From Utricularia gibba (Eukaryota; Plantae; Magnoliophyta), in NCBI GenBank assembly GCA_002189035.1, contig NEEC01000012.1, positions 3,224,001 through 3,288,000 on the forward strand: 64,000 nucleotides of DNA, written 5' to 3'. The position numbers and the translations under genes are program-made. Of the stretch, positions 2,124 through 54,962 are shown piece by piece. A model generated the notes under the pieces. That model saw nothing but the letters and a program-made list of their open reading frames with translations. It was not told the DNA's origin and did no database searches. The number at the start of each line of letters is the position of its first letter. Position 1 is the stretch's first letter.

Positions 2124-4260
2124 TCAACTCCCATCTGGTTTGCTCACCCCGTCGCCGCCGCTCATGCTCTTCACGACGGCCTCCTTTATAATTCGAAGGG
2201 AGTTCTGAAAATCCTCGCAGAGCTGATGAGGGTCAGGTATCACCGCCTCATCAATCGCCAGGAACACTATCAGCTTCTTCGCGTAGCTTTGGAAGTGGAT
2301 CACCAGTGGCTGAAAGCAACAATAAGAAAACAGAGACATGTGCATGGAACTGGTAACTGCCATTATTATGGAGGAGGAGGTACTCACCAGTGGGATTCCG
2401 GTGACCGTCGGTGCGAGGTAGGTGAGAGGATGTCCCAAGAAACTGATCTCATGCATCGGCCCGATCACGCTCGAAATCCCAAAGGTAATGTTTGATACAA
2501 ACATGTTCAGTAAAAGAGCTCCAGCCTGAAAGCACAGCGTAGTACCATGAAACAGTGTTGTAGCAGATTATCGACAGAAAGCAGATGGACACTCACGTTC
2601 ACTCCAAACAGGTAGATGACGAGCTTCATGAAGTAGTACTGGACGTGAGTTTGGAAGGAGAGCTTCTTCCTGTTCATCACAGCCTGCGCATCACGTATGT
2701 ACGACAGGGGGTCTTCTCTGGTGCACAGCTTCATTGGAAGTATGACGAAGCTCACTATGTTTCCCCACATCTTCACGTCGGCCATCTTTTTCTCCTTGCG
2801 TATCACCTCGTACGTATCCTGCCCACAACCAGAAACACAATGTCGAATGAAAAGAATCGTCTGAGATGGTACGGACTCGTCGGCGGTTTCTACTTCAACC
2901 GTAGGGGATGGCCGGAGATTGAACGGCGCAAGAGCCCGTATGCGAAGCTCTCTGAGGGGATGATGCTTCCTCTTCTGCTTCACATTTGCACCATTTTCTT
3001 CTTTCGTCCCACTGTCTCGGGTGCTACAAGAAACAATACAGGTAATAAGCACAATAAGATGTCCATTTTCTTCTTGCTCTAAAACAAAAACAGAAATCAA
3101 ATTTCATACTTAATTATACTATTAAAATTTCTAAAAATATAATCATTTTTATTATAAAAATAGCCCATTAAATAAATGCATGTGAAAAAGGTGATTAGTG
3201 AACGCCCTGGTTTTAGTAGAAGAGGAAGAAGAAGCCACGTCACCACATGTTCTTCTCTGGAGATAACTGGCGAGGGCCGCCTGAGTGATTCCGAGGAACA
3301 CGTCGTTAACTGTCTGAAAACATCAAGAAAGAGTGGGTTCGAGATCAGTTTCAGTATTTTGAGCGGAGGAGTAGAAGAAAGTACCGCTTTCAGGGCATTC
3401 TTAATCAGCTTAACGTCGTCGAAATCGAGGATACGGTGGACGTACGTCCTCGGGGAGTTTAGCTGCCGCATCCTCGCCGACGAGGCGTTGATCGGAGTGG
3501 CGGAGTCTTTTAAAAATACAAGTGTAGCCACGAACTCTACTGTGTCCCTTATCGTATAGTACGCGATCGAAAGCATTCTCCAAATGATGGTGATCATAAA
3601 TGAACATATTCCCTTGTCACGGTTACTCTTCTTGCTTCGCCGTTGAACTGTCGTGGGGAGAACCGGCAGAGCTTCGGGGTCGGAGAGTTTCCTGCCACAC
3701 GCTAAGAGAATCGACATGAGGGATACGCCGTCGCCGACAGAGTGGTGGATCTTGAACACGGCGGTGGCGGTAGAGTTGCTGGTTTTCACGTTCAGAATGT
3801 GGAGTTCCCATAAGGGCTTGGAGTGATCCATCGGGATATGCCCGATGCTCGATATGAACCCCGCCACGAACCCATCCCCTCGATCGGCCTCCGCCTCCAA
3901 ATCCAAATCCGGCACCAAGACATGCTCCTCGATGTTGGGTTTAGTCGGCTTCCACGACATTTTGAACCGCATCTCATCCTCCAAAACCTAACCCCACCAG
4001 GCGCAGAACGCCACCATGCTCGTCGAGGTTAGGTCTAGAACTTGAACTCAATTCAGAATTGCAGCAATATACATACTCACAAGGATGCTTGAGAAGCGAG
4101 GGTGCTTAAGCAAGGTTTGGGCGGCGACATGCTTGACAAACGCGACGTCGAGTGGAGTGCTGAAACCCATAACGACGATGATGCAGAGATTGAAATTGGG
4201 TGTATGCATCAGCCGTGAAAAGGGGCTTGCATTCTGCACTTCCTCATTCCCGTCGGCCAT
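2124..4260 (-). CDS. WSD1: Wax ester synthase/diacylglycerol O-acyltransferase (WSD1-like), tandem copy 2, apparently complete
   Basis: Starts MADGNEEVQNASPFSRLMH; contains HHSVGDG, TVNDVFLGI, LAPFNLRP, WGNIVSF...DPLSY..RKKLS, ISNITFGISSVIGP and LVIHFQSY...IPDPHQLC; stop at 2124-2126. Same exon layout as copy 1. Confidence 0.92.
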
Positions 4261-7200
4261 TCTCAGTCTATGCACCGGAGTTGGTCAGCCCGCCACCGCC
4301 TGATACCGTTATATAGGCGCCCCTTTCACCTAACAACAAGTTGCACCAGTGCCAATATGGTTTATTTGTAGTAATGTCTTCAATGATGTGAACTAGAAAA
4401 CTGTGATTGGTGGTTTCATCCCTGATTTGTGCATGATAATTTTTCGAAATTGCTTCTCTAAAATTGATTTTAGATGTGCATACTAAAGTGATCGACTGGC
4501 TTTCCCTATTCAATATGCTTCTCCTACCCAGAATTTATTGAGAACTCGCTCAGTGTTAAATGTGATGGAAGACCACTCGGGGATGGTCGTACTGTCTTCG
4601 ATGAAGCAGTTGTCTTTTTCACCGAGAAACGAGTTCCGGGGTCACCTTGAAGGCCAATGATCCACTCCCAAATCCACTTTCTCTCCCTTTCACTTGTTAT
4701 AACGGCTTCACGGTTTACTGCGTTGCCGCCAGGTCGTCTTCTCCGGCGGGCCTTGATTTCACGTAAAACCCAGTGCCCAATTCTTGCACAGAATGTCACA
4801 CTACGGACATTCGGAACCACCAGATTCCTTATTATTGCATAATGAAACCGACAAAAATTTCTCCTTTAAAAGACGATTCAGGGTGGAGTTGCTATCTGTC
4901 TTCATATCTTCCTCCATCACTGGAACATGTTCAGCCGAATAGCCCCAATATCAAGTCCTATCCTGTCAAATCCAGACATGGAGTTGTGGTATTGAGTGTT
5001 CACAAGATGGCATCATCAGAATGGTCATCATTTCAAGAGAGGGATACTCGGTGTTTTTCTCATCTCCATAACCAAAAGTCCATTATTTCAACATGCTGCC
5101 TGATAAAATCAGCCCACATTCGTTCCACAGTCGATCTGGGCGACCCATCCGCCCGATGTCTAGTTAAGAAACACAGCAACCATCAGTATTGATTTGATTG
5201 CACAAGGAATCAGAGGCGACGGTGGCGACGGCGTGCTCTGAATCCGATGCCCGCGCCGTCGCCATGGGATACATAGAAGATATCCAGAGATGGAGGCGAA
5301 TGATGCGAGCAGTTTAAAGTCAGGTGCCTAATCCCCATATCAGCAGCAGCAGCATCATGGAGCGAGCACATGGTTAGTTGCCCAAGCTGATGCATCACTC
5401 GCTTTACCCCGCCCCATTCGGAAATGAATCTTTTGATAAACATTTGTGTCCACGAGCAAATGTCCAAACGATTCCGTTTTTGTGTTTTAAATTTCAAACA
5501 GATGACATTGACACTGTCCCTCCCTCCCACCAAATAATTTTCACCCATCCAAAATCTAAAATATTGCAACTACCTACCCCAAAAGATAAGACTGGACACA
5601 AAGAAGAGACAAGTAATTAATATTTGATCATCAAATAATACCATATCTAAAAATTGAAATAATAAATACAAAATATTGTACATTAATAATAACCAATTAA
5701 ACTTTATCTTTTCAAATATGATCTAATGTGTTTTATATATTTCAATGTATTCACTCACTTATCAAATACTGAGTTTCAATAAGTTGCATTCAAACTAAAG
5801 CAATAACATAATAAAAGAAGAACGAACGTATTGTATTTGATATCATTATCAAGGTGAAATGATCATCTAAATAGCTTTTTTTCTAGAGCTTCACGATCAA
5901 TAATTTTAGAATCAATCTAAATTCTTACGATTTTACGTTTAATGTCATTTCCATACGAAAGAGTAAGTATGGTACATTACTTGATTTCTCAGCCGCCCGA
6001 TGGCAGTTCGATTTGGATTCCCTTTTAGACAGGGAGAAAAACACTTGACACTTCTCCTGTCGCCCCCATGCCTCGCTCCCCTCCATTTCTGATGCTTTAT
6101 TTCTCATAAACGGGAATCACTCTTCACCTAATCAAGCATATGCTCCGACATAACCAACCCACCAAATCATATTATGTAACAAGAAAATAAATTGCATCGC
6201 ATATGGATTACATCCTTCGTTATTCGAATCGGATTTGGGTTTGAATTATATGATTCAACTTAGTATTATATCGATTTTGCACTAATAGTTGTAACCACCA
6301 TTTGATCCATTTACTGTTTAATTAAATTACGATGAAATTTTTTATATATTTTTAAATAGTTTTATCAGCTCAATATATTCAATTAATTTCTTATTAAACT
6401 ATTAATAGTAAATTTTTTCCGATAATATCTCTGCTTTTACCTAAATGATATAATTAGTCACGAAAAACGTAATTTAAATCATATTCCGCACATTTACCCT
6501 CGTGGTCGCGGCGATATTGATTTATGTTTTTATTTTTTGGTTTCAAACAAACACCTCCTTTTCATTTCTGTGGTGTGAGACACATTCCACGTGGCACACA
6601 CATGATGGGTGTGGCGTTCGTTCGTACAACCATGAGTTGTAAGATTTGACCAAATATCGGTGCTGGAATTTATCATATAAAATAATAAATTATTTTCGTG
6701 GTGCTCATGTTTTGTTACATGAATATTAACACGTAATTAATTATATTTTCTTTTCTATTTTTTGTTGCTGATCTTGAAAGATGACGTGTCCGTGGATGAA
6801 TGATTGTTGGCTACCAACTGCGTGGTGTCTTAAATCCCAACTTCTCTATTATTATTCAACCATTTTTAAATTCTCTCAACTTAATTCTTGATCCCACAAA
6901 ACTATTCATTTAATTTAAAATATGATTTGGATAAATTTATATTTTACACATATATTTATTGAAAACAAATTAAAAAAATATGGGTTTATGTTAAATCCAT
7001 CTACCAAACGCATTTCAAATTTAAAATTTTCAATTATGTTTTATCTTATAAGTAAATTCCCAAACAATTTACCACCCCATTCTAAAGATTTGTGTTATTT
7101 CTATTTTATAACTGAAATGAATAATGTAGCAATGGGGAGTGGTTGGACATGAATTTAAGTGGTTGGTACAACAACAAATTGCCATGCCATCATCACATGT

Positions 7201-7811
7201 ATGTGCATACCACATCACATCCCCTCACTAAAATAATAAGATCATAATTTAGAAAATTGCTCATCTTTTTCACACATGGGTAAAAAAAATATTAATTTTT
7301 GTTGATTTAGTGGATGTTAGGGAAATTGGAGATAACTACTCTTCCAAATATATCATTGATTGATGTACTTGAATCGATTAATCGACGAATCGAATGGATT
7401 AGTCCGAATTTTAGACTTCTAATCTATCAACGAAAGATAATGTAGCATTTTTCTATAAAGATACACATTAGGAAAGAAAATTTAAAAATAATACACTTGT
7501 TGGATAGTGAAATAGAGACAAATGGATAATCATCCAATAAAAAAAGTATCAAAATTGCTCCTTTTTTAAAAAAAATATTTGCGCAAATAGATTTTTCTTT
7601 CTAAAAGAATCACATGCTTTAAAACTGAAAAAGAAAAAAAAAAACTCGACCACAAGGTGATTCTTACCAGGAATATCTTTGGTGTTAGTAGATATTTACA
7701 GGATGGTGGTATAAATGCGTCCCATCCCATGGCCATGAGATGATTCACAGGTCTCCTCCCGAGCCGGAGCCAGGGAAAATTCAGACTCCTCAGCTGTGTC
7801 GTGACCTACAT

Positions 7812-8215
7812 ATGAGCGGCTGGGGTTCCATGAGGTACGGGCGGCGGTTCACCGGCCATGGCAGGTCGAGTGTCGGTAGGCTCCTGCGTATGGTGATTGT
7901 GATAGCGGTGGTAATGGCGCTGTCCCCGACGGCTGCGGTGGCGGACGGGGTTCTTGAGGGAGTCAGGCGGTTTGTGGCCGTACTCGTTTCCCGGAACTGT
8001 GTCTTGAATCGCTCTCGGAGTCGGCCGCGGCTGTCCCCGGCGGGGATCCGGTACACATGTCCGTGAACTTCACGCTTCAGAGATTTGGGCAGGCGCTGTA
8101 CGCGGCTTCTGATATTAGCAACGACTTTGAGATGGATGAGAAGGTCAGGGCTGCCTACGAGGACTGCCTTGAGCTCCTCGACCACTCCGTGGAACTACTC
8201 TCGCGATCTCTCTCC
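7812..8215 (+). pseudogene. 5' part of exon 1 of a PMEI-PME pectin methylesterase (PME34/PME61-like), cut by the Copia insertion
   Basis: TM segment (MVIVIAVVMALSP) followed by a PMEI start: CGRTRFPELC...HMSVNFTLQRF...VRAAYEDCLELLDHSVELLSRSLS. Needs one extra T at 7971-7973. The frame ends in TGA, the first LTR triplet. Start could be the ATG at 7812 or 7830. Confidence 0.85.
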
Positions 8216-8605
8216 TGATGTCGAGTGAGGACGAATATGAGATAAACCAGCAGCAAACTGTGAGAAATGTGGAGGACCCAGAACAGGAAAATACGAATGT
8301 GTTGAGAGATAACGGGAGGAAGAAGAAGAAGATCTGTCAGCAACTCGGACTGATTATACTGGACAGCAAGATCAGAAGATGGGCCACCAACAAAGATCTT
8401 GCTACTCATCCACTTCAAGAAAATGGCCCAACATGATGATATGGCCCAACGTGCTGAAGTCAATATTGTTGGAAGTCGTAGTGAGCAACGGCTAATCCCT
8501 AGAAGTAGGCGACCGTTGCTAAAGAACTATAAATATGTGTACTCTTGCATAACATTAAAATATATCTGTTCTACAACCCTCACACATCGATATAAACTGC
8601 TATCA
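8216..8605 (+). repeat. 5' LTR (390 bp)
   Basis: Matches 13171-13560 except A8332 vs G13287; TATAAA at 8528-8533. Confidence 0.97.
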
Positions 8606-8623
8606 TGGTGAACCCGACGTGAA
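8606..8623 (+). promoter_or_regulatory. Primer-binding site complementary to the tRNA-Trp(CCA) 3' end
   Basis: TGGTGAACCCGACGTGAA directly abuts the LTR. Its reverse complement TTCACGTCGGGTTCACCA equals the recalled 3'-terminal 18 nt of plant cytosolic tRNA-Trp. Confidence 0.85.
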
Positions 8624-8737
8624 ACAAGCAGCTCAACATTGCTATCCTTCCAAACACGGTTTGCCACTCAAACACTACATCTAAAGGCTTCTTACCTTAC
8701 TCTATATTCTATCGCAGGTTCTCAAAAGAGTGTCATC

Positions 8738-11700
8738 ATGTCTGTAACAAACATATTACCTCCCATTTTTGACGGAAAGGAATACGATATTTGGGCGCCA
8801 AAAATGGAGATATATCTCCAACTTCATGGGCTCTGGAAAATAATAGCCACTGATCCAGTTTTTGAAGGAACACCTGAAGAAAAAACTGCAGCTGAAAAAG
8901 CTTATAGAGACAAAGAAATTCAGGCTGCAGCTGTGCTAGCCACAGCAGTGGTTGGAGATGCTTACAGGTGTATAACTCGAAGGTCTCCAAGAGAGGCGTG
9001 GCTTATGCTCGAGAAAACCTTTGAAGAAACAAAGGAAGACAAGCACAGGGAGATACAGAAACTATGGAATGAAGTTTACAACTTCAAAATTAGAGATGGC
9101 GAGGTAGCCACCAATGCAGAACAACTTCTCAAAAACCTGGAAAAACTAAAGCGCCTTGGAGAAGAAGTTGACTCCCGTGAAGAGCGCAAGCTTAAGGCCA
9201 GGATCATTCATAGTGCTCCGGCAGATTATGATGCTGTCGTTGAATCCTTGGAAGCAACCGGATTTCTAGAAACTCTGAGTCTGCAGCAACTGCTCCAACA
9301 CTTCAAAAATGTGGACAGCAGACGTAAATCTCGCAATGAAGAAAATCTATTAGAAGCTGCCTTCAAAGCATCACTTACTATAGCAGGTCCTAAAGGAGAA
9401 AATGGGACACAACAATATTCTGCACCAAGTTTCCTACCTGTCAAGAAAGAGAAAAAGGGGCCACATCCTCCTTGCCCATATTGCGCACAGAAAAACCACA
9501 TTCCAACGAACTGTTTTTGGCATCCTGAGGCTCATTGCGCAATCTGTTCAACCAAAGGCCATGTGGAGCGTGTGTGTCCCACCAAGAAATCATATGCCTC
9601 TACTTATGTTGTTGCTGCATCTTCTGAACATTCAAAAAACAAATCAATTCATGTATCTCCTGATGATTCAAATATGAAAGTGAAGTCTTCAGTTTATATC
9701 TTGTGCAGCAAGACTACTCTCTCTGATTTCACTGATCTACGACACAACACAATCTGGTTCATTGATTGCGCCTGCAGTAATCACTTGACCAACAACAAGT
9801 CTATATTCACAACATATACCCCAATATCAGGAAAAACTCTCACCATTGCTGATGGAACGCTCATTGCAGTTGAAGGTGTTGGATCAATCTGTCTGGAAAC
9901 TGAACAAAAACTCATCAAGATTACTAATGTATTCTATGTACCAAAGGCTTCTCACAACTTACTGAGTGCAGGACAACTAGCAGAATGTGGATATGAGTTG
10001 AATATAGAGAACAATATGTGCTTGTTGAAGGATTATGCTCACAATATTGTACTAAAAGTGCCCATGGTAAATCGCCTCTTTCCAGTTAACTGCATGACAA
10101 CTAATAGTAATTTCTGTCTTGCAGCTGTAAATACCTCTTTCCTATGGCACAAAAGATTAGGTCACTATCATGCAAGCCAACTCAGAACAGCGCAAACCCA
10201 AGGAGTTATACATGGCGTACCTCAATTAAAGGACTGGAATTTCCCGTGCAGTACCTGTCTATTTGGGAAAATGCACAAGAAGCCATTCAAGAATCGTACT
10301 GAAGTATCCGACTCTAAACTACAGCTAGTAGTCTCTGACGTATGCGGACCTATGCATGTTGAGACACCTGGTGGAAAGAAATTCTATGTCCTATTTATTG
10401 ATGACTACACCAAGCATATGTGGGTATATTTTCTTAAGCAAAAGTCTGAAGTGACTAAATACTTCAAGCAGTTCAAGATGATGGCAGAATTACAAAGCAA
10501 TTGTAGAATACTTACTTTGCATTCAGACAATGGCGGGGAATACAAATCATCCGAACTCCGAGACATCTGCAATGCAAGTGGTATAGTTCATCGGTTTACC
10601 GTTCCATATACCCCTCAACAAAATGGTGTTTGTGAAAGGAAAAATCAAACGATTATGAATATGGCTCGTTGCTTGTTATTGGAACACAACTTACCATTGC
10701 GCTTTTGGGAGAAGCTGTTAACACAGCGGTATTCCTATTAAATCGACTTCCCACCAAAGGAATACCTGAAGGAAAAACTCCACATGAACTGTGGTATGGA
10801 AAAGTCCCAGATCTACAGAATCTGAAAATCTTCGGATCCCTCTGCTATGTCCATATATCTAAAGAAAAACGCAGAAAGTTAGAGAATCATGCTCAAATGG
10901 GGGTCTTTATGGGATATTCGGACTCCTCTCAAATTTACAGAATATTTATTCCATCCAAACAATGTATAGAAGTTCAAAGATGTGCTGATGTTGTGGTTGA
11001 AGAAAGTCTGACCTATGACTGGCATAATATCTCTTCTACTCCTGAAAACGAAGCTGAATATTCCAGAGACATGCAACTCCTATTTCCTATCAATGCATCT
11101 GAAAATCTTACTGAAATGCACGAAGAGAATCTTGTCAATGAACTTCCTGAAACTAATACCACTATTACGAATAATTCCAATCTTGTTGGTGCAGAAACAG
11201 AGGACAACAATTATTTCAGACATCACTCAGAAAGGAATCAAGACATGCAAAGTAATGATCATATGCCATATCCTACTTCGTCGCAACAGCCTCAACATGG
11301 AGAAAGCAGAGAATCAGAATATCAATTCTCTTCATTACAAGAACAGGAGGAAAATACATCTCACTTCCAAAACTCTGAGCAAATTATATCTGAAAGACAT
11401 GATAACACAGAAAATATCTCAGAAGATTCAGCAAACAACTACAATTCCTATACACATCACTTTATGCTGCAGTCAGCCGATCATCTCATAGATGAAGAGC
11501 CTGCTAGAGGTTACTGTCCTCTTACTGAAGTCTATGACAGATCGCTTATGATTTGTGAACCTACCTCTCCCTTCGAAGCTCTCAATGATCCTGCATGGAA
11601 AACCTCAATGGATAATGAGTTACAGGCCATAGCAGAGCATCAAGTGTGGACAGCGGTGGATAAACCTCTCAATATTAAACCGTTGGGATTAAAATGGATT

Positions 11701-13391
11701 TATCGCACAAAGCTAAATCCAGACGGCTCAGTAAATAAGTTAAAGTCTAGGCTGGTTGCAAAAGGATATCTTCAAAAGGAAGGTATAGACTACTGGGAGA
11801 CTTTCGCACCGGTAGCTCGTCTGGATACAATAAAATTGATTATCGCATTAGCCACCAGTCAAGGTTGGATCCTGCACCATTTAGACATAAAGAATGCGTT
11901 TCTGAATGGAGACTTGAAAGAAGACATATATGTTGAAAATCCTCCCGGTTTTACACTAAAGGATGGCTCAAATAAGGTGTTAAAACTCCAAAAGGCTCTC
12001 TACGGGCTTAAACAAGCGCCCAAGGAATGGTATTCAACCATAGATTCATACTTTGGTCAAATGGGTTATATCAGAAGCAAGAACGACCTACTCTATACAC
12101 CCTCAACAATCAAACTGGAAAGGTCATCATATCTTTATACGTTGATGACATCTTACTAACAGGAAATAACGAGACATTGATAGCAGATCAAAAATCAAGG
12201 CTCAAACAACGGTTCGAATTGACTGATCTAGGGCCAGCAAGATATATTCTTGGACTAGAGATAATACAAGATCCCAATTTTATATTTCTCAGCCAGCAAA
12301 AATACACTGAAGACTTACTAAAAAAATTTGGGATGGACAATGCAAAAGAAGCAACTACGCCTTTCACTCCATACCTGAAGAACAAGGCAAACAACTATCT
12401 GAAAGAATTAAATTCTGCCGATTCAGGGCCACAAGATCCTCAAGAAAATTCAGTGAACATACGAGAATATCAGAAGACTGTTGGTGCCCTACTATACCTC
12501 ACCTCAACTCGACCGGACATTACATTCGCTGTAACGTTTCTATCCAGGTTTATGCATCACCCTCTTGCTTTACACCTTAGAATAGCTAAACAAATATTCA
12601 AATATCTGAATGCTACAAAAACTATGGGTTTATACTTCAAAAGGCATACTGACCTATCTCTTCAAGGGTTCGTAGACTCTGATTTCGCAGGTGACGAATC
12701 TGATCTTAAATCCACCACTGGTTATTTGTTTACTCTGGGCTCTGCTGCATTTGCTTGGAACAGCAGAAAACAGACCTTAGTAGCTCAATCCTCAGCCGAA
12801 GCAGAATACATGGCTGGAGCTTGTGCTGCAAATCACGCTCAATGGCTCCTGAAATTATGTGAAGATTTACAGATCAAGATTAACAAGCCACTCATTCTGA
12901 AAATTGACAGCAAATCAGCCATAAGTATAGCTCAAAATCCGGTCATGTTTGGGAAGACGAAGCATATCAAAATCAAATACCATGTTCTTAGGGAATACAT
13001 CAAAGAAGGAAGCATAAAATTGGAGTATTTACCATCAGAAAGACAAGCCGCAGACATTCTCACCAAAGCCCTCTTTCCAAGTCATTTCTCTCAAATCCGT
13101 GAGCTATTAGGGCTGCGCAGAAATCCCTTGATTACTGCTGCCTCATCTCATGTTCTTCCTCAAGGAGGAATGATGTCGAGTGAGGACGAATATGAGATAA
13201 ACCAGCAGCAAACTGTGAGAAATGTGGAGGACCCAGAACAGGAAAATACGAATGTGTTGAGAGATAACGGGAGGAAGAAGAAGAAGGTCTGTCAGCAACT
13301 CGGACTGATTATACTGGACAGCAAGATCAGAAGATGGGCCACCAACAAAGATCTTGCTACTCATCCACTTCAAGAAAATGGCCCAACATGA
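8738..13391 (+). CDS. Copia gag-pol polyprotein, split into three ORFs by two -1 homopolymer frameshifts (10707-10709, 12087-12088)
   Basis: Gag PIFDGKEYDIWAPKM; knuckles CPYCAQKNHIPTNC and CAICSTKGHVERVC; PR WFIDCACSNH; INT LWHKRLGH, SDVCGP, HSDNGGEY, QQNGVCERKN; RT RLVAKGY, DIKNAFLNG, KALYGLKQAP, YVDD; RH DSDFAG, AEAEY, ADILTK. Confidence 0.93.
13162..13170 (+). promoter_or_regulatory. Polypurine tract
   Basis: AAGGAGGAA immediately before the 3' LTR. Confidence 0.8.
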
Positions 13392-13560
13392 TGATATGGC
13401 CCAACGTGCTGAAGTCAATATTGTTGGAAGTCGTAGTGAGCAACGGCTAATCCCTAGAAGTAGGCGACCGTTGCTAAAGAACTATAAATATGTGTACTCT
13501 TGCATAACATTAAAATATATCTGTTCTACAACCCTCACACATCGATATAAACTGCTATCA
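13171..13560 (+). repeat. 3' LTR (390 bp)
   Basis: Direct repeat of 8216-8605, followed by TSD TCTCC. Confidence 0.97.
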
Positions 13561-15191
13561 TCTCCGTCATCAGTCGCGGCGGCGGAAAGGGTTCCTCCGA
13601 TGTGCTGACGTGGCTCAGCGCGGCGATGACGAACCACGATACTTGCACCGACGGATTCGCGGATTTGAGAGGCCAAGTCAAGAGCCAAATGTACCTCCGT
13701 CTCAAGGACCTCTCGGAGCTGGTGAGCAACTGCCTCGCCATCTACACCGCCACGGCCACCGGCCGCAGCAGCGAGGCCTACTTCTCCGGGATCCCCATAG
13801 AGAACCGCCGCCGCCGACGCCTCCTCACTCTCGCCGACGGCCGCGATCCCTCCTCCTACCCCATTGGCTCTCCCGCAGGGACAGGCTCCTGCTAGACACC
13901 CCAGCCGCGGGCATCAAGCCAGACGTCGTCGTTTCCCCAGACGGCAACGCCACGTGCAAGACCATCACCGAGGCCATCAAGCTGGCCCCTTCCAATAGTA
14001 CCCGCCGATTCATCATCTACATCAAGGCTGGCAAGTAAGTTTCTTCACTTTTTTCACCTCTGTCATTACCTCCTTTTTTTTGTTTTTGTTTTTAAATCAA
14101 GAATCGGTGACTGCCCCCGCAGGTACGAAGAGGACTTGTTGAAGATCTCCAGGTCCAAAACCAACATCATGATGATCGGAGACGGGAAGACTAAGACCTT
14201 CATCTCAGGCGGTAAAAGCGTCATGGATAACGTCACCACCTTCCGTACCGCCACTTTCGGTAATTTTGTAGTATATTTTGATTTCATCATTTTTCTATAT
14301 ATTTCTGGGTTAAAAAGTAGTATTTTTTAGAAGGGTGATCAGGCGCCTCATAATTTAGGGTTTTTGGACAAGGGAATTAAGGTGACGGTTGGCGCCGTCG
14401 TGTGATTAGGGAAAATGATCCATGTTCTGGTAGGCCATGTCCGTGTCTGTCTGCTGCCTAAGAATCATTCATTTTCTGTGTACTGTAGCCGCATCGGGGA
14501 ATGGGTTCGTGGCTCGTGATTTGACCTTCGAGAATTGGGCGGGTCCGGGGCGGCACCAAGCGGTGGCGCTTCGCATCAGCGCCGACCACGCGGTGGTCTA
14601 CCGTTGCAACATCATCGGATATCAAGACACGCTCTACGCCCACTCGCAGCGCCAGTTCTACCGCGGCTGCGACATCTACGGCACCGTCGATTTCATCTTC
14701 GGCAACGCCGCCGTGGTCTTCCAGAACTGCACCATTGTCGCCCGGAAGCCGCTCCCGGGGCAGAAGAACACGTTGACCGCACAGAACCGGAAGGACCCGA
14801 ACCAGAACACGGGCATCTCGATCCACGCTTGCCGGGTCGTGGCGCAACCCGACCTGGACGCCGCCAAGTCGGCCTACCCGACGTACCTCGGCCGCCCCTG
14901 GAAGCTCTACTCGCGGACGGTGTACATGCTGTCGTACATCGGAGATCACGTGCACCCGCGGGGTGGCTCGAGTGGAACTCCACCTTCGCACTGGACACGC
15001 TGTACTACGGCGAGTATATGAATTACGGGCCGGGTGCTGCCGGCCCCGGGTCCCAGCGGGTCAACTGGAAGGGCTACCATGCCATCAATTCGTCGGTGGA
15101 GGCGAGCCAGTTCACGGTGGCGCAGTTCATTTATGGGGCGTCGTGGCTGCCGTCCACGGGAGTCTCCTATTTGGCCGGCCTGTCCACGTAG
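13561..15191 (+). pseudogene. 3' part of the PMEI-PME gene: rest of exon 1 (to 14034), exon 2 (14123-14259), exon 3 (14489-15191)
   Basis: Removing the element restores ...SRSLSVISRGGGKGSSDVLTWLSAAMTNHDTCTDGF. Processing motif RRRRRLL; catalytic-domain motifs QAVAL, QDTL, DFIFG and LGRPW are all intact. -1 frameshifts at 13859-13862 and 14960-14963. Confidence 0.9.
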
Positions 15192-21101: not shown

Positions 21102-24100
21102 ATGATCATGTCCCAGGACGAGGAGGATGTGCTTCTGCCCCGTCTCTTCATCTTCTTTGTCTTTCTGGTTTCAGGTGTGATTCCCGGGACATAGGGATTT
21201 GTTTCTGTACTGACCCTTGATCAGATTCTGAGATAAGGAAGACCATCCATCACTGATGTTGCTTCTTCTTTCATGTGAACAGGAAAGCTTGTTTGCGGGG
21301 ACTATTCTCTGGTCACGGACAAGCAAGTGTTGCTACAGCTCAAGTCTTTTCTCGTTACCCTGAACCCTGTTGTCTTCAATCAGGGAGATTATTCTCGGTG
21401 GGATGCAACATCTCCTTCTCCATGTACCTGGCCGGGAATATCCTGCGGCGGCGGGGGTAGCGCTGAACGTGTCGTGGGAATCGATCTCTCCAATGGCAGC
21501 ATCATGGGAAACCTCTTTGCCAACTTCTCCGCCCTCACGGAGCTGAAATATCTCGATCTCTCAAGTAACACAATCACCGGAGATTTGCCGGAGGATATAG
21601 GCCGTTGTTGGAATCTCAAGATGTTGAATTTGTCCCACAATCTCATCTCCGGGCAGCTTAACTTGACGGGTCTGAGGAATCTGGAGATTCTGGATTTGTC
21701 CCTCAATAGGTTGGGCGCTGATATTCGTTTAGGCATTCCGATGGACTGCTCCAATTTGTTTGTAGCGAATGTTTCGGGTAACAGATTCACCGGAAACATC
21801 CGTGGAGTTTTCGAATTCTGTACCAATCTCAAGTATATTGATCTCAGCACCAATAACTTGACTGGAGATATATGGCCTGGATTCGACAGAATGGAAGAGT
21901 TTTCGGTGTCGGAGAATCGTTTCACCGGGGAAATCCCAGTGTCGATTTTCACAGAGAATTGCAGCTTACGGGTCCTGGATCTGTCAGCGAATCATTTCTC
22001 CGGGGAATTCCCAGGAGAAATCTCCAAATGCAGGAACCTGGAGATGCTAAGCCTGTCGGGAAACAGGTTCACCGGCCTGATCCCAGAGGAAATAGGTTCA
22101 TTGTCCAAGATCCAAGGTCTGTACTTGGGGAACAACAACTTTTCCAGGACGATTCCAGAGAGTTTCATAAGCCTCGGGACGCTGGAGTTTCTTGATTTGA
22201 GTCGAAACAACTTCGGGGGAAGCATACAGACGATTTTCGGGAGCTTAACGCAGGTTAGATATCTCCTGCTGCACATGAATTCCTACACCGGAGGAATCTA
22301 CTCATCGGGAGTCTTGAGTTTGTCTAATCTGAGGCGTCTCGATCTGAGTTTCAACAACTTTTCTGGGCGTTTGCCAATGAATACATCCCGCATGACAAGC
22401 CTGCAGTTCTTGATGCTCGCCCACAATCAGTTCTCCGGCGCCATACCTGACGAATATGGAGATCTTAGAAGCCTTCAAGCTCTCGATCTCTCCTTCAACA
22501 ACTTATTTGGCTCCATCCCAAGGAGCTTGGGGAATTTGACTTCACTGTTGTGGCTGATGCTGGCCAACAATTCACTGACAGGGGAAATACCAAGAGAACT
22601 TGGGAACTGTAGCAGCCTGTTATGGCTGAATCTTGCGAATAACCAGCTTTCAGGGGGGCTTCCACGTGAACTGACCAACATCGGAGTGAATGCCACACCT
22701 ACTTTTATGCTCAACAGGGCAAGCCGACTGCTTCCTGCCGGCTCCGGCGAATGCCTGGCTATGATGAGATGGATACCGGCGGATTATCCCCGTTCAGTTT
22801 TGTATACAGACTTCTTACAAGAAAGAGCTGCAGGAACCTATGGGACCAGATTCTGAAAGGGTATGGCCTATTTTCTGTGTGCTTACCGGGTTCCAACGTG
22901 CGGAGGATGCAAACCATGGGATACATTCAGCTCAGCGGCAATCAGCTCTCAGGCGAAGTCCCTGATTCCATAGGAAACATGAAAAACTTCAGCATGATTC
23001 ACTTGGGCTACAATCTGTTCCAGGGTAGGCTTCCTTCTGATATAGGGGAGTTGCCATTGACAGTTCTCAACATCTCAAACAACTTCTTCTCGGGGAGCAT
23101 TCCTTCTGAGATAGGCAACATCAGATGCCTGCAAAATCTTGATTTGTCATACAACAACTTCTCTGGCATCTTCCCCTGGAGCCTCATAAACTTGTATGAA
23201 CTTACTAACTTCAACATTTCGTACAATCCCCTTATCTCCGGCAGTGTCCCGGATGCCCACCAGTTTATTACATTCCAGGAATCATCATTCTTTGGTGTCC
23301 CTGGTTTGCATCTACCTGAGTTTATGCGCAACTCCTCCAAAAGGGGGCAAAGCAGCCAGCCTCAGGGGCGCAAGATAACAAGAGCAGCAACTCCATTTTC
23401 ACACGTCTTTGCCGTGGTTCTTCTTGCATTATTCATCATTGGAGTACTGGTCTTCATATGTTGCCGTAGATATCTGCTACGGCGCTCGAAGAATCGAAAC
23501 AGTCTGTCTTCGGGGGATACCTTTAAGGCCATCCATTTGAATGAAATGAAGTTCACACACTCGGATATTGTGAAGGCAACTAGGAGCTTCTCCAGTGAAA
23601 GGATCATCGGCAGGGGAGGGTCTGGGGTAGTTTACAGAGGCGTTCTGTCAGATGGGACACAGATAGCGGTGAAGAAACTGCAGACTGATGGGATTGACGG
23701 CGAGAGAGAATTCTGGGCTGAAATGGAAGCACTGAGAGGAAATGGGGGACACCCAAATCTAGTTCCTCTCTACGGATGGTTTCTCGGTGGATCGGAAAAG
23801 CTTCTTGTGTACGAGTTCATGAAAGGGGGGAGCCTCGAAGACATGATCACCGACGGGATCCGCTTCAATTGGAGAAGAAGACTGCAAGTTGCAGTAGATG
23901 TTGCTCGGGCCTTGATGTTCCTACACCATGAATGCAATCCGAGCATAGTTCACAGAGACGTGAAGGCCAGCAACGTCCTCCTGGACAAGAACGGTACGGC
24001 CAGGGTTACAGACTTCGGGCTGGCGCGCGTAATGGAGGCCGGCGGCACCCATTACAGCACGACCGTAGCAGGGACAGTGGGGTATGTGGCGCCGGAGTAT

Positions 24101-24409
24101 GGGCAGACGTGGCAGGCGACGACGAAGGGGGATGTGTACAGTTACGGGGTGCTGGTTATGGAGCTCGCCGCTGCGAGGAGGGTGTTGGACGGTGGAGAGG
24201 AGTGTTTGCTGGAGTGGGCGAGGAGGGTGATGGGAGATGAAAAGGGAGAAAAGACTCCGGCGAAGGTGTTGATCTCCGGCGTGGCGGAGGGGGCCGGGAA
24301 AATGTGGGATCTGCTGCGGATTGGGATACTCTGCACGACGGAAATTCCCAATCACCGGCCTACTATGAAGGAGGTCTTGAGGATGCTCTTCACACTGTCA
24401 CAAACATAG
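21102..24409 (+). CDS. NILR1: LRR receptor-like kinase, NILR1/At1g74360-like; exon 1 21102-21174, exon 2 21283-24409
   Basis: Signal peptide, about 20 LRRs, island segment GECLAMMRWIPADYPPFSFVY..LTRKSCRNLW (one C missing at 22788-22791), TM, kinase GRGGSGVVY, AVKKL, HRDVKASN, DFGLAR, GTVGYVAPEY. Confidence 0.92.
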
Positions 24410-33175: not shown

Positions 33176-36100
33176 TTATTCAATCCCAGCTTCGGCTTCC
33201 GCTAGTTCTGCATCATATTCTTCTAACAGATAATCACAAAGCTCCAACAGTTGATCAGCAAGAGGAGGAATACCAGGATTCCTCCCATCGTTGTACTTAT
33301 GGGCGTTGTAGCATATCTGATATACGTCCTCCCGGAAATCATCACGGTTCTTGTATTCCATCCTCCTCACCTTCTCCCTAATGGTGGACAAATCCATTGG
33401 GCAGCTGATGATGCTGTGGTAGTCGGGAGCTTCCTTTCTGGTTACTGGTTTAAGGAATAGGTAAGATATGTCTTTTCTTCCCTTGAGCTTCTCCACAATG
33501 CTTTCTAATATGTTAGACAAGCCAACCTGAAACAAGAACAATATTCGTTAAAGGACTTGTGCAACAAGAACAATTTCTGAAAAGGTACTTATGCACTGAA
33601 GGCAGGTTCTATGATCAAAAGATTGCTATGCCAAGAATGCATCTCAGCTTAACGACACTCATCTCATCCTAGACAAGGATAATTTCATCACAATTGTGAG
33701 TATCGACAGTGAAACCACAGGCCAAATCCTCTCCCTAATTTCCTGGTTGTGTAAATGAAAGTGGAGAAGAATGGCAATCACTAACCTCCCCTCCCCTCCG
33801 TCGTTTTGAGGACTGGGAAGAATCTGGAATAATGGCTCCATACTCAAATTCCGGCACCCTATGCAGTGATCTTTCTCGTTCTAGGATGCGCCTGTCATTT
33901 CTTTTAGGAGGGAAGCTATCTATGTAATCATCATTCTTTTCGTGTTTCCTCTTCTTTTTCTTTTTAGCCTTCACCCTTTGACGTTCTTCTTCTTCTCTTT
34001 CCCTTCGAATGGACTCCCCATATCTTAGCAACTCATAAGCAGGTTCTGGTATTCTCATTTTTCCAGCCCTCCTGTTTTTCTCTTCTGACTGACTTGTCGC
34101 ATCTCTCATTTTCTCATCAAACCACCAAGGACCATCCTCTTGTACTTTCGCCCTTGATGTCTCTGCAAGCAGATTTCTGTTTTCAGGCTTCTGCCTTGTA
34201 TCAAAACTAGACAATTCAGCAATTTTCTTCATTTTTCTGAAATCAAGCCCAAAACTTCCATCCTGACTGTTCTCATCCATGCGAATGATCTCATTCGACT
34301 GTCTGATGACATTTTTCTTGTAAGAGATATCTCTACCAGGCTCCACAAGAGGTTTTATTCCTACTGAGGGCTTCGGTGATTCAACCATGAAGTCATCTGA
34401 TTTCATCTTATTTGAAAAAATGATTTTATTGACTTTTCGTGTTTCAGCATCAGAAGCAACAAGAGGATCAGAGGACTGTGAAGTTGCCGGAGTTTGCTTA
34501 TCTTGAACAGTGTCTGGTCCACATTTGACCTTCAGAAACTTCGCCTTCGGAGTTGTTATTCTATCATCATCCTGAACCTGAAAGGGGGCAGTTTTTGAGC
34601 CATTTATAGCTAAAAGCTTTGCATTCTGCGGTTTTTGTTGGCCCTGCTCAATTTGATCCATGGAACTAGGCCGGCTTAAAAACTTCTCCAAATCTGCACC
34701 CTCGCCTCGTGCTTCTGAATCTTCACCATACTTGGGGCAGTGCTTGTTGGTCCTCATATGACCAAGCTGGGTTCCATAAGAACATGCATAAATGCAACAT
34801 TAAAGAGATATGCGTACATGCTTCAGAGAAAAGGCTTACCTGACCACATGCTCCGCAGATGAAACTTTCTCTGGCTGGCTTTTTTTCTTTCATAACCTGT
34901 AAACCAAGCAGCAGCGTTAAAAAAAAAAAAGAAGAAAGTTTCATAAAAGCGTTGATAATGCACACATAAATTATACAAGCTATACCATCGGGTAAAAGCT
35001 AGCAGATTTTAAATGCAAACCACACATTTCCAAGGATGTTCATGGTCAAAATGCAGGAGCAAGATGCATACGGATGAATTCAGATGTATTAAAAACTCAA
35101 TGGTTCGTTTTTTGGTTGAGAGCCTAGGAGCTTACGTTTATTGCATCTCCCAAAATTTTGACCTTTGTGTTCAGATAACCCATTTGATCACTGCCTTTTG
35201 TCTTTTTGGGTTTTGATTTCCCAGTGAAGTTTTTTTGCATAGACAAGCCGTCTCCCTGCACCAAGAAATTCAATTGAGGTTTACAGGACATTGGCAGCAG
35301 CATCGGCAATGCTGGATTGTGAGGAGAAGTTGAGTTGTCTCCAATTACCTTTTGATCTTGATTAGCTTTCTCTGTTAACATGAATGAATCAAGAGGTTGC
35401 GTGATTCTTTTGGAAATAGAGTTGTTCTTCTTGATTCCATCAACACCTTCACGAAGACGAGATTTCAGGGGCAATCCACCTTGACTGCTCGCTGCTTTTA
35501 TCTTCTTCTTTTTCTTCCAATCAGTTTCATCATCTACAAGAAAAGAGCATATTTAGAAATACAGTTAAGATCCCTATTAAAGTACGCCTACTGCTCTAGA
35601 GCTGAATAGTCCAGACCAATAAAACTGTTATACGCAGTAAGTACTTTTGAAGAACTTATTTTACATATGAAGCAATGGTTTCCGAAAATTTTGAAATTGC
35701 ACATGAAATGCTCAGCAGGCATGAAAGTAAAGGTTATTGAAAAGCAAATTTGAAACCAGAAAACTGAATTCGCTTGTAAACAGAGTACCATCCATCAGCA
35801 TCTTGCACAATTCTGCAGCTTCTGCAGCCTCATCTTCAATCTCTTCTTCAGCCTGTGTTTGAAAAGAGCGTCTCCTCATCTTTAGTCCCCTTGCACCACC
35901 AATGTTCTCAAATTTAGCTTCGTCATTACCCACTTCCTCCTCTTCACATTCTTCTGCATCAAGAAGATTTTCCAAATCGCCAGCAAAGGAATCCAAGTCA
36001 CTATTAGCATCTGACTCAGTTTCATTTTCTTCACCATCGCCAGAGCACAAACTGTGAACTTGTCGCTCCCATATCTCCTGACATTTTTCCCGAGTCTGCT

Positions 36101-52018: not shown

Positions 52019-53759
52019 TTAGATCCCTATCTCTCCCTTTTATTTTTAACGCGGTAAATTTTAGAGTGGGCCCCTCCCCATAAAAGAAATTTATTTTCAT
52101 GGCAATCAATTTCTCTAATTGATGAAGATCAAAATCAACTATAGAGACGTTGATGTTTGCAAAAAGAATATTACCCACTGCGGAGTAAATAAAAGTCGAG
52201 TCCCCTTTAACCATGATATCTGACGGGAGAAGATCAAATCAACTCCTTGGAACCCTAAATAATTCGTACATAAAATATAACTTTTTTATTTTTTATTTGT
52301 ACTAAAATTATTTTTAAATTAACACTGCATATAGGTTAAAACTAAAACATGTTAGTTTTTTTTATTTTTTAGATTTACTTTTACTTCGGTAAAATTCATT
52401 CAAAAATAGTTTTCAATTTTATTTTTTTATTTTGATTTTTGTGGTACATTTGCAATTCTATTTCTATTTTGTAAAAAATAATATTTTTTAATTAATTTTG
52501 GTGGCATTTTATTTGGTTATGTTTTTTTGAAAACAATTTATGAAATGCGCATCTAATAAAATAAAAATTGGAATTTTTTGATATTTTGAAAATGAGAAAT
52601 ATTTTTGTAGTGTAAAAACTAAAATGTTTAAAATTATGGAAATTAGATTTTAATTGAGAAAATGTTTTTAATGCAATAATTGATTTTTGTTATTTTAATT
52701 ATTGTATGATCGGAAACTGTACGGCAGAGAAAGGGAGCAGGCGGAAGTTGGCGGATTTGGGTCAAGATCCGAACACCGGGAAATTTACTTCTCTGTTTCC
52801 CACTGACCTATTTCCCTTGTTTTGTTGTCTTTAGTAGACTCTCTTTCCCACTGCCTTAAGGGGGAAATGCATCCACCATTGTTGGTGCATCAGTGAAGTA
52901 AAGGCGCTCTAGAGTTGCCGATTACAGTCCTCTTTGCTGGCTAAAGTGAAGAGCATTAAAGAAATTTGGTTGTTCGTTGTATGATTTTACTCCACGCGGC
53001 TACTGAGGCTCGGATCATAGTGGTTCTTCATCACATTTAAGTACTGGGTGTTTGCGAGTTTGAGTCCTTCGCAGGGGTGAAGTTTCCTTCATCGTTTTTC
53101 TATTTTCAATGTTTTTTGTTCGCATTTTTTGCTTACTCTGCCGTTTTTAGCGACTGTGTTCTCTACATGGTGTTGGATTTTGAGTCTTGGCTGAAGGTGA
53201 AGAAGAATCTGAAAGTTGTGCATTGCATAAATTGTGTGATTTTGCGTATTTGCTGTGAAGTCTGGTGTTTCTTTACAGGGTTTTCTGCCTGGTTACTTTA
53301 ACCATCAGAATACCCTATTCGTTGGTATCTCCAGCGTGCAATATTTTTTTTACGGATCTACTAGGGTTTTTTCTTCCTTATTGTTGACGGATCATTAAAG
53401 CAGTTCTAAGGGTTCATATATTTCATGGGTGAAGATGATGAAGTGCTTAGGATTTCAGAGATGTGTGTTCTTTAGGAATACCATTTTTCTCTTTGATAAT
53501 TTATCTCATCATCCACTTGGAAAACGTTCCCTGTTCATGATTCCATTTCTAAAGATGCATGGATTCGGTTGGTCTCTATTTTTTCTGGTGCCTTTTGCAA
53601 TTGGTATTTGTAATAAAGTTTTTGTATGCCATGAAATTATGTTGTTGCTTGTGTTTCTCAGTTATTCGATCAGTATAATTTATTGACCGCCTGTGGTTTT
53701 TGGCAGGTTGTAGTTCAGATATTATAGTTGGAAAGGAGAATCTCCAGAGAAACATTGTG

Positions 53760-54962
53760 ATGTATAGACAGTCTCCCAGTCGAAGCAGTCAAAGATCCAA
53801 GCGGATCAAAGTGAAGCATGTTCTCCAATTTGCATTGTTGCTTGGTGTTGGCTGTTGGTTGTTGTACCAACTGAAGCATTCTCATGATAAGAACATAGAA
53901 CTTGAAAAGAATGAAGCGAAAGGTATACCCGAAAGTTTACATGGCATTGAACTTCCAAAACTTGGAAGGAAGGGGATACAGGATATACCTGAGGAAACAT
54001 TGTCCAGGAATGCAAAGTATCAGGGATTAGTGAATGAAGAGGAAGATGAACAAGAAAATAAAATTGAAGAAAGCGAATCAAAATCAGAGACTCTGTCAAA
54101 AGCAGAGTATGGCGGGGAAGGAGATGGAGTTGATGAACTTGAGGAGAATGACCAAGAGGGAACTGATGCAGACTATGAGGAATTGCCTGGTGATGAGAAG
54201 GATAAAGAAGTGGATGATGAGAATGAAGCAGATGCTGATGAGTCAGCACGTGATAAAACAGGGGCGGGAAGCTCAGCGGAAGAGACAGATCAGGAAGGAG
54301 ATAACGTGAGCATCCCAGAAGCACGGGAGACACAATACAATGCGGATGATGCCTCTAGTGCTGTGGCTCATGATTCTCAAATAAGAAATTTCGAAAATGC
54401 AGAGGGCCAATTTGATCAGTTTAAAACTCACAATAACTCCTTGGAAGCCACCAAAAATGACACCAGAAAAGACTTGGAGGTGGTAGTTGATGAAGTGGCT
54501 GGAGAACACCTACTAAATGTGGTGAATGAGTCAGGTGGAGGTATTACAGAGAGTTCTGCAAATGGGTCGTCTGGCAATAGCACAACTGAGATAGCAACTG
54601 AGAGCAAAAGCCTATCATTAAACAGTACTGTGCATGAAGACAATGCTGAGGCAGTTCCTCCCGGGATTAAATCTGAAAACGGCTCCATTTTATCTGCTGT
54701 TACCTCAGACCAGTTAGATACCTCAAATCCACCAAATTCTGCTAATAAAACCACAGATGCCGAACTTCCAAATGAACCAGCGTCAGAAGAAAACATGGTG
54801 AGGTCTGGGGCATCCGGTGATGCAGAAGTTGATTCTATTGATGGCTCAAGCATTAAACTGGAATCAACATCAAATTATGAACTTCAAGAAATTCTACGTG
54901 AAGCCGTCGATACCCTTCCAGACATACAAAATAATGGAGCCGAAGGTGCTGCTGCAGAATGA
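53760..54962 (+). CDS. Uncharacterised plant type II membrane protein with a long acidic disordered tail
   Basis: MYRQSPSRSSQRSKRIKVKHVLQFALLLGVGCWLLYQLKHSHDK (recalled plant family N-terminus with a single TM), internal YNADDASSAV motif, intronless CDS, spliced 5' UTR (acceptors at about 53279 and 53707). Confidence 0.8.
   Translation: MYRQSPSRSSQRSKRIKVKHVLQFALLLGVGCWLLYQLKHSHDKNIELEKNEAKGIPESLHGIELPKLGRKGIQDIPEETLSRNAKYQGLVNEEEDEQENKIEESESKSETLSKAEYGGEGDGVDELEENDQEGTDADYEELPGDEKDKEVDDENEADADESARDKTGAGSSAEETDQEGDNVSIPEARETQYNADDASSAVAHDSQIRNFENAEGQFDQFKTHNNSLEATKNDTRKDLEVVVDEVAGEHLLNVVNESGGGITESSANGSSGNSTTEIATESKSLSLNSTVHEDNAEAVPPGIKSENGSILSAVTSDQLDTSNPPNSANKTTDAELPNEPASEENMVRSGASGDAEVDSIDGSSIKLESTSNYELQEILREAVDTLPDIQNNGAEGAAAE

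Follow-up and report, generated by a model that had tools for sequence, protein, structure and literature searches.

A Ty1/copia element of Utricularia gibba with a primer binding site complementary to tRNA-Trp

The primer tRNA is treated as lineage-defining for plant LTR retrotransposons, and the published rule that Copia elements use tRNA-Met has exceptions. Outside plants, tRNA-Trp is the primer of the avian sarcoma/leukosis retroviruses, which have an 18-nt site. The point of reference for our purpose is the REXdb survey by Neumann et al. (2019; PMC6317226), with 5,410 plant Copia elements. There, tRNA-Met is given for every Copia lineage in which a complete tRNA serves as primer, and Gymco-III (tRNA-Leu, in two of three elements) is the sole whole-tRNA, non-Met Copia entry among the dominant types. 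In the same survey, tRNA-Trp is the dominant primer binding site (PBS) type of two gypsy groups only, Phygy (81%) and TatI (75%). We found no catalogued Trp-primed plant Copia element in the literature, where the survey table gives dominant PBS types only.

The 3' end of tRNA-Trp is also familiar as a small RNA. Few plant small RNAs have been reported as widely as its 18-nt fragment, which has been annotated as 'miR894' and was recognised as a tRNA fragment (tRF); 85 papers name miR894 and tRNA together. In Cryptomeria, where it reaches 13,000 cpm, Trp fragments were mapped to gypsy primer sites and Met fragments to Copia.

Here, we describe a Ty1/copia element in a 64-kb stretch of U. gibba DNA, in the following referred to as the window. 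The last replication cycle of this element was probably primed by cytosolic tRNA-Trp(CCA) at positions 8606-8623, a reading to which we assign a probability of roughly 80%. It is helped by the fact that plant gypsy groups are already known to have a Trp-type PBS. Counting against it are the single known copy, whose best matches among 1.84 billion protein representatives do not exceed about 46% identity, the lack of extra primer contacts in the leader, and the lack of a tRNA gene in the window.

The element and its insertion site

The element spans 5,345 bp (8216-13560) and has the following features, listed together with the parts of the host gene on either side:

7970-8215, plus strand: host gene of a type-I pectin methylesterase, left part, with profile positions 6-92 of the PMEI pro-region (Pfam, translation)
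8211-8215, plus strand: left target-site duplication (TSD), TCTCC, the same five bases as at 13561-13565
8216-8605, plus strand: 5' LTR, 390 bp, TG..CA ends, direct repeat of 13171-13560
8528-8535, plus strand: TATA-like box in the 5' LTR
8606-8623, plus strand: PBS of 18 nt, perfectly complementary to the 3' end of mature cytosolic tRNA-Trp(CCA), CCA included
8738-13391, plus strand: polyprotein gene GAG-PR-INT-RT-RH, broken (two frame changes, noncanonical protease motif)
8804-9337, plus strand: GAG (Retrotran_gag_2; Pfam)
about 9473-9577, plus strand: two CCHC knuckles after the GAG domain (motif scan)
9755-9994, plus strand: protease (Pol_BBD; Pfam), its motif compared with 127 relatives
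10076-11013, plus strand: integrase (gag_pre-integrs, rve core, SH3_retrovirus; Pfam)
11641-12365, plus strand: reverse transcriptase (RVT_2) with YVDD (Pfam, motif scan)
12468-13136, plus strand: RNase H region, from blastp alignment to relatives, without a separate Pfam match
13162-13170, plus strand: polypurine tract (PPT) AAGGAGGAA, flush with the 3' LTR
13171-13560, plus strand: 3' LTR, 390 bp, direct repeat
13561-13565, plus strand: right TSD, TCTCC, matching 8211-8215
13566-15191, plus strand: right part of the host gene, with the rest of PMEI (profile positions 105-156) followed by the pectinesterase catalytic domain (Pfam, translation)

The Pfam domains follow each other in the order Retrotran_gag_2, Pol_BBD, gag_pre-integrs, rve, SH3_retrovirus and RVT_2, which corresponds to GAG-PR-INT-RT-RH. 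The LTRs have TG..CA ends and are flanked by a 5-bp TSD, the integrase lies upstream of an RVT_2-type reverse transcriptase, and PBS and PPT adjoin the LTRs, as is characteristic of Ty1/copia. A preliminary description of this DNA had called the element a plant Copia, and both the domain order and the location inside a pectin methylesterase gene support this assignment. The GAG contains a tandem pair of CCHC zinc knuckles (9473-9577); plant Copia GAG proteins usually have one.

The two LTRs are identical at 389 of 390 positions, which speaks for a recent, full replication cycle. The single mismatch in 390 bp translates into an insertion age of about 0.10 My at a rate of 1.3e-8 substitutions per site and year, or 0.18 My at 7e-9, with a very wide error. 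Judged from this divergence, the insertion would be recent, roughly 0.1-0.2 My old with wide error, and the earlier claim of a young insertion is thus upheld by the LTR identity and the intact TSD.

The preliminary description had further considered the element 'probably active', a claim that fails for the window copy. The polyprotein is distributed over three in-frame pieces, none of which has an internal stop, and which were searched separately. The frame changes between them lie in zones without a homopolymer longer than four, as an assembly-error check revealed. Moreover, the catalytic motif of the protease is noncanonical at two of three positions, in a form found in none of the 127 relatives, of which 101 have the canonical one; the YVDD motif and both CCHC knuckles are retained. 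From its reading frames, the window copy is thus non-autonomous as read, and, given the two frame changes and the odd protease motif, it cannot demonstrate a working, Trp-adapted machinery. A copy of this kind would have moved in trans, or would have decayed after its recent landing in the exon for the pectin methylesterase pro-region. At its 3' end, the polyprotein frame passes the PPT and continues into the 3' LTR for 221 nt (13171-13391), so that about 75 residues at the C-terminus come from U3.

The insertion splits the exon for the PMEI pro-region in this type-I pectin methylesterase gene. Independently of it, the reading frame of the host gene changes at least once more between PMEI and the catalytic domain, and probably once near the N-terminus. 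Either the gene was already decaying and is a pseudogene, or indel errors are present in the assembly.

The element is the single LTR retrotransposon in an otherwise gene-bearing window. Two tandem pieces of WSD1-like genes (wax ester synthase/DGAT; 681-1337 and 3097-3984, minus strand) are about 71% identical to each other over 300 nt. The stronger protein matches of the WSD1-like exon are 38-52% identical, and all named ones are from eudicots, with Genlisea and Sesamum at the top; these low identities suggest a fast-evolving or poorly sampled host lineage. A gene for an LRR receptor-like kinase (21327-24409) is read in two overlapping frames, one with the LRR part and the other with the LRR plus kinase part, which may be due to a short intron or else to a further frame change. 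Two further long open reading frames, 33735-34757 (minus strand, 340 aa) and 53700-54962 (420 aa), have no Pfam match, and the former is also without an exact match in the protein collection. The AT skew of the window is strongly negative at 44-50 kb.

The primer binding site and its tRNA

The sequence at 8606-8623, TGGTGAACCCGACGTGAA, is the one quoted in the preliminary description. Its first base directly adjoins the end of the 5' LTR (..CTATCA, 8605), leaving a spacer of 0 nt, so that the 18-mer is indeed flush with the LTR, as had been claimed. The reported lack of a Met-type motif could be confirmed as well, and for the whole 64 kb: no TGGTATCAGAGC-like sequence is present there with up to one mismatch.

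To identify the corresponding tRNA, metagenome contigs were scanned for the 15-mer that remains of the PBS without the CCA complement, yielding 120 loci on which tRNA genes were called with ARAGORN. All 20 tRNA genes that overlap the 15-mer are tRNA-Trp(CCA) genes, and in each of them it forms the 3' end of the gene; the loci include a 21st tRNA-Trp gene, which deviates at its 3' end. The gene sequences stop before CCA. With CCA added, tRNA-Trp pairs with the element over exactly 18 nt, corresponding to tRNA positions 59-76. Published small RNAs from soybean, mulberry, Eragrostis and Cryptomeria also include an 18-nt RNA that ends in CCA and is exactly complementary to the site. The complementarity stated in the preliminary description thus agrees both with the tRNA genes and with the plant small RNAs, and fragments of the tRF-3 Trp type, to which it had pointed, do exist at the exact length of 18 nt in these four data sets.

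Could such a match be fortuitous, or stem from a stray piece of some tRNA-Trp gene or pseudogene, with no role in priming? We regard this as practically negligible. The exact 18-mer occupies the sole position that is possible for a PBS, and it is the sole match in the 64-kb window even if three mismatches are allowed, for which 0.03 matches would be expected by chance. Furthermore, 8606-8623 includes the complement of the CCA, which is added post-transcriptionally and not encoded by eukaryotic tRNA genes; the source must accordingly be a mature tRNA, not a tRNA gene fragment. Lastly, neither ARAGORN nor Rfam detects a tRNA in the window, and Rfam detects no other family either. By its complementarity, the PBS is thus of the tRNA-Trp type, which differs from the initiator tRNA-Met type.

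From the sequence of this site, we infer that the window element was actually primed by tRNA-Trp. In the proposed mechanism, the 18 nt at the 3' end of the mature tRNA (positions 59-76, including CCA) would anneal to 8606-8623, beside U5, and the reverse transcriptase would extend this primer into R-U5 before jumping to the 3' R. The PPT at 13162-13170 would prime the plus strand, and plus-strand strong-stop synthesis would copy the first 18 nt of the tRNA, so that a perfect site would be regenerated in the new copy. The preliminary description had assumed co-adapted primer selection in addition. This is without support in the leader (8500-8760), where no stretch of 7 nt or more outside the PBS is complementary to tRNA-Trp; the tRNA-Trp sequence for this comparison was taken from a gene found in the metagenome contigs.

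The two bases that follow the site deserve separate consideration. Positions 8624-8625 (+19/+20) are A and C, which extends the match to 20 nt against a read variant of tRNA-Trp with U at position 58. At this position, the 21 tRNA-Trp genes from the metagenome contigs all have A, which would call for T at +19. The modification m1A58 makes reverse transcriptases misincorporate. In small-RNA reads, U is often seen at position 58 of tRNA-Trp; the U and A forms coexist in Cryptomeria, and U/A has also been seen in jute. Among 24 element-like full sites in the metagenome contigs, the base after the 18-mer is A in 15 and T in two, although many of these are related copies and not independent; the count omits L118, where the downstream genes look bacterial. 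A and C follow the Trp site in several independent elements (L002, L039, L032, L060, L081 and L113). That the bases at +19/+20 originate from read-through of A58 may be entertained as an idea, but it is not a finding. If it were true, primer sites would record not just the identity of the primer, but also the modification of the tRNA.

Relatives and other elements with the Trp site

The claim that the element represents a family is unproven, as no second copy is present in the window, where it is the sole LTR element, or among 1.84 billion protein representatives. An exact-sequence protein look-up with the first polyprotein piece gave no match, and a word-index search with the GAG-PR-INT piece gave three distant matches only. 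An exhaustive search with the latter piece against the 1.84 billion representatives returned 71,899 matches, none of which is close: the best ones are 33-39% identical, or 46% in the case of integrase-only fragments. The nearest relatives are angiosperm Copia elements of Tanacetum, Artemisia, Rubroshorea, Prunus, Rhynchospora and Platanthera, with a protein identity of 28-34% over GAG-PR-INT and about 50% in the reverse transcriptase; they carry no lineage name.

The PBS of these relatives was read where the locus had an LTR pair or an LTR-end-plus-PBS motif; L125 is interrupted by an assembly gap, the contig of L126 is too short, and L128 lacks an LTR pair. All five readable relatives (L121, L122, L123, L124 and L127) have a Met-type PBS, which makes the Trp site of the window element a derived state. 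In L121 and L122, the match to initiator tRNA-Met comprises 12 nt, compared with 18 nt for the Trp match of the window element. The Copia norm assumed in the preliminary description, i.e. initiator tRNA-Met with a shorter match, is thereby corroborated, in agreement with the survey (Neumann et al., 2019).

A derived Trp site in a single known copy may have arisen in different ways. It could be the product of a one-off conversion, in which tRNA-Trp mis-primed an element of a Met-type family once, and the 18-nt copy became fixed at the heteroduplex stage in the window insertion only. That a PBS is replaced after another tRNA has served as primer is well established for retroviruses, and the length of the site is exactly that expected from plus-strand strong-stop copying of the tRNA. 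Likewise, the A and C at +19/+20 are what reverse transcriptases write past position 58 in small-RNA libraries. One copy is known, this copy is defective, and the five relatives that could be checked are uniformly Met-type. Yet the Met and Trp sites share just their first four bases (TGGT), such that tRNA-Trp would anneal very weakly to a Met-type site, and a second plant Copia family, described below, has the Trp site as a heritable, conserved trait, so stable use is possible. On balance, we consider a one-off conversion unlikely.

The metagenome contigs contain the 15-mer 125 times, and in 25 cases it extends to the full 18-mer. Most of the elements with the 18-mer have a gypsy domain order, for example L049, L064, L081 and L112, in which the identical 18-mer occurs together with the order RVT_1-RNase H-integrase. 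L064 comprises two tandem gypsy-order elements with identical Trp sites at 978-995 and 7496-7513; they share an LTR-like repeat (1-1011 and 6478-7527, 82% identical), and an open reading frame on the GAG side of this locus matches DUF4100.

The prevalence of gypsy elements at these sites bears on another possible origin, in which the LTR-PBS end was acquired by a template switch from the co-packaged RNA of a Trp-primed gypsy element (Tat/Phygy-like). In addition to the metagenome elements, the Cryptomeria fragments that map to gypsy sites are compatible with such a recombination, as is the role of tRNA-Trp as dominant primer in gypsy Phygy and TatI (PMC6317226). However, the TSD of the window element measures 5 bp, as in Copia, rather than the 4 bp of Phygy and TatI, and both LTRs form one unit with a Copia interior. 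Moreover, none of the 120 Trp-motif loci resembles the element at the DNA level, and the 64-kb window contains no gypsy element. A recombinant origin therefore appears improbable.

The second plant Copia family comprises the metagenome loci L002, L039 and L084. L002 and L039 share 99.9% identity and match all three polyprotein pieces of the window element in Copia order, with 30-40% identity. L084 is more distant, with 74.7% identity to L039 over the LTR end, PBS and leader, but has kept the Trp site at 18 of 18 positions; L002 and L039 also have A and C at +19/+20. More diverged relatives of this family are found in JGI, ENA and Logan data, and in three additional copies (L129-L131), degradation or nesting leaves no PBS visible. 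A contig of sample 3300013873 that bears a relative of the L039 family also contains a gene for DUF761 ('cotton fibre expressed protein'), a domain that, to our knowledge, is confined to plants. We therefore take the family as plant-derived. L002/L039 and L084 (sample 3300013873, also Ga0115851) come from an AT-rich genome with a GC content of 0.31-0.35, in which they constitute a degraded multi-copy family.

In this second family, the Trp site is thus a conserved trait, and its retention in both L002/L039 and L084 shows that Copia machinery can use a tRNA-Trp primer stably. A Trp site in plant Copia thus appears to be rare, but is not unique to the window element. For the window element itself, we infer that the trait belongs to its family and not to this copy alone, and we lean slightly towards a stable family trait.

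We also considered whether the two Copia lineages belong to a common Trp-primed clade. In a neighbor-joining (NJ) tree of 44 sequences, based on 302 columns of the C-terminal integrase and N-terminal reverse transcriptase regions, the window element and L039 were sisters in none of 100 bootstraps, a weak test given fragments of about 40% identity, and both were located near the Met-primed P0066. Since the window element and L039/L084 are not sisters and both stand among Met-primed relatives, plant Copia elements may have switched from Met to Trp independently more than once, with A and C at +19/+20 as a trace of reverse transcriptase reading through the modified A58. This combined scenario is a tentative one that we deem rather doubtful, and the NJ placement would be weak evidence for independent switches.

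Primer choice in comparison with known systems

The preliminary description had expected a switch to tRNA-Trp to change the exposure of the element to silencing by 3' tRFs aimed at the Met site. The available evidence points in the opposite direction: exactly complementary Trp 3' fragments are abundant in many plants, and the Trp site of the window element is a perfect complement of the fragment annotated as 'miR894'. With such abundant fragments, the switch would swap one tRF target for another, and an escape from tRF silencing through the Trp site is unlikely.

While a single broken copy limits the conclusions, the window element and the second plant Copia family together indicate that primer choice can change within Copia. 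This is of practical relevance for annotation, as PBS-based classifiers may label Copia elements with a Trp site as gypsy or 'unknown'. Furthermore, such elements bear on the question of how primer selection is determined, and on which 3' tRFs target which elements, for instance in the case of the abundant fragment misannotated as 'miR894'.

In its primer, the window element resembles the avian sarcoma/leukosis retroviruses, which share the Trp type and a full 18-nt site ending opposite tRNA position 59; the host and the element class are unrelated. In its anatomy, its counterparts are the Met-primed Copia lineages Ale, Alesia, Ivana, Tork, Angela, Ikeros and SIRE, which have the same LTR, TSD and PPT anatomy, a 5-bp TSD and the order GAG-PR-INT-RT-RH (PMC6317226). 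With about 5.3 kb, its size is also like that given there for Ale, Alesia and Ivana (PMC6317226). It differs from the Met-primed lineages in having an 18-nt tRNA-Trp site in place of an initiator tRNA-Met site.

Phygy and TatI present the reverse combination: these gypsy groups share the tRNA-Trp primer type, but have the order RT-RH-INT and a 4-bp TSD, as opposed to the Copia order and 5-bp TSD of the window element (PMC6317226). The same applies to the gypsy elements L049, L064, L081 and L112, whose 18-mer is identical and whose domain order differs. Gymco-III, in turn, is a plant Copia group that likewise uses a whole tRNA other than Met; it uses tRNA-Leu, however, and is listed in the survey with a gymnosperm host and only three known elements (PMC6317226). 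Another parallel is the L002/L039/L084 family, which combines Copia order with the identical 18-nt Trp site. It is distinguished from the window element by a 2-nt spacer (TT) between LTR and site, where the window element has none, by the heavy degradation of all copies seen, and by a protein identity to the window element of just 30-40%.
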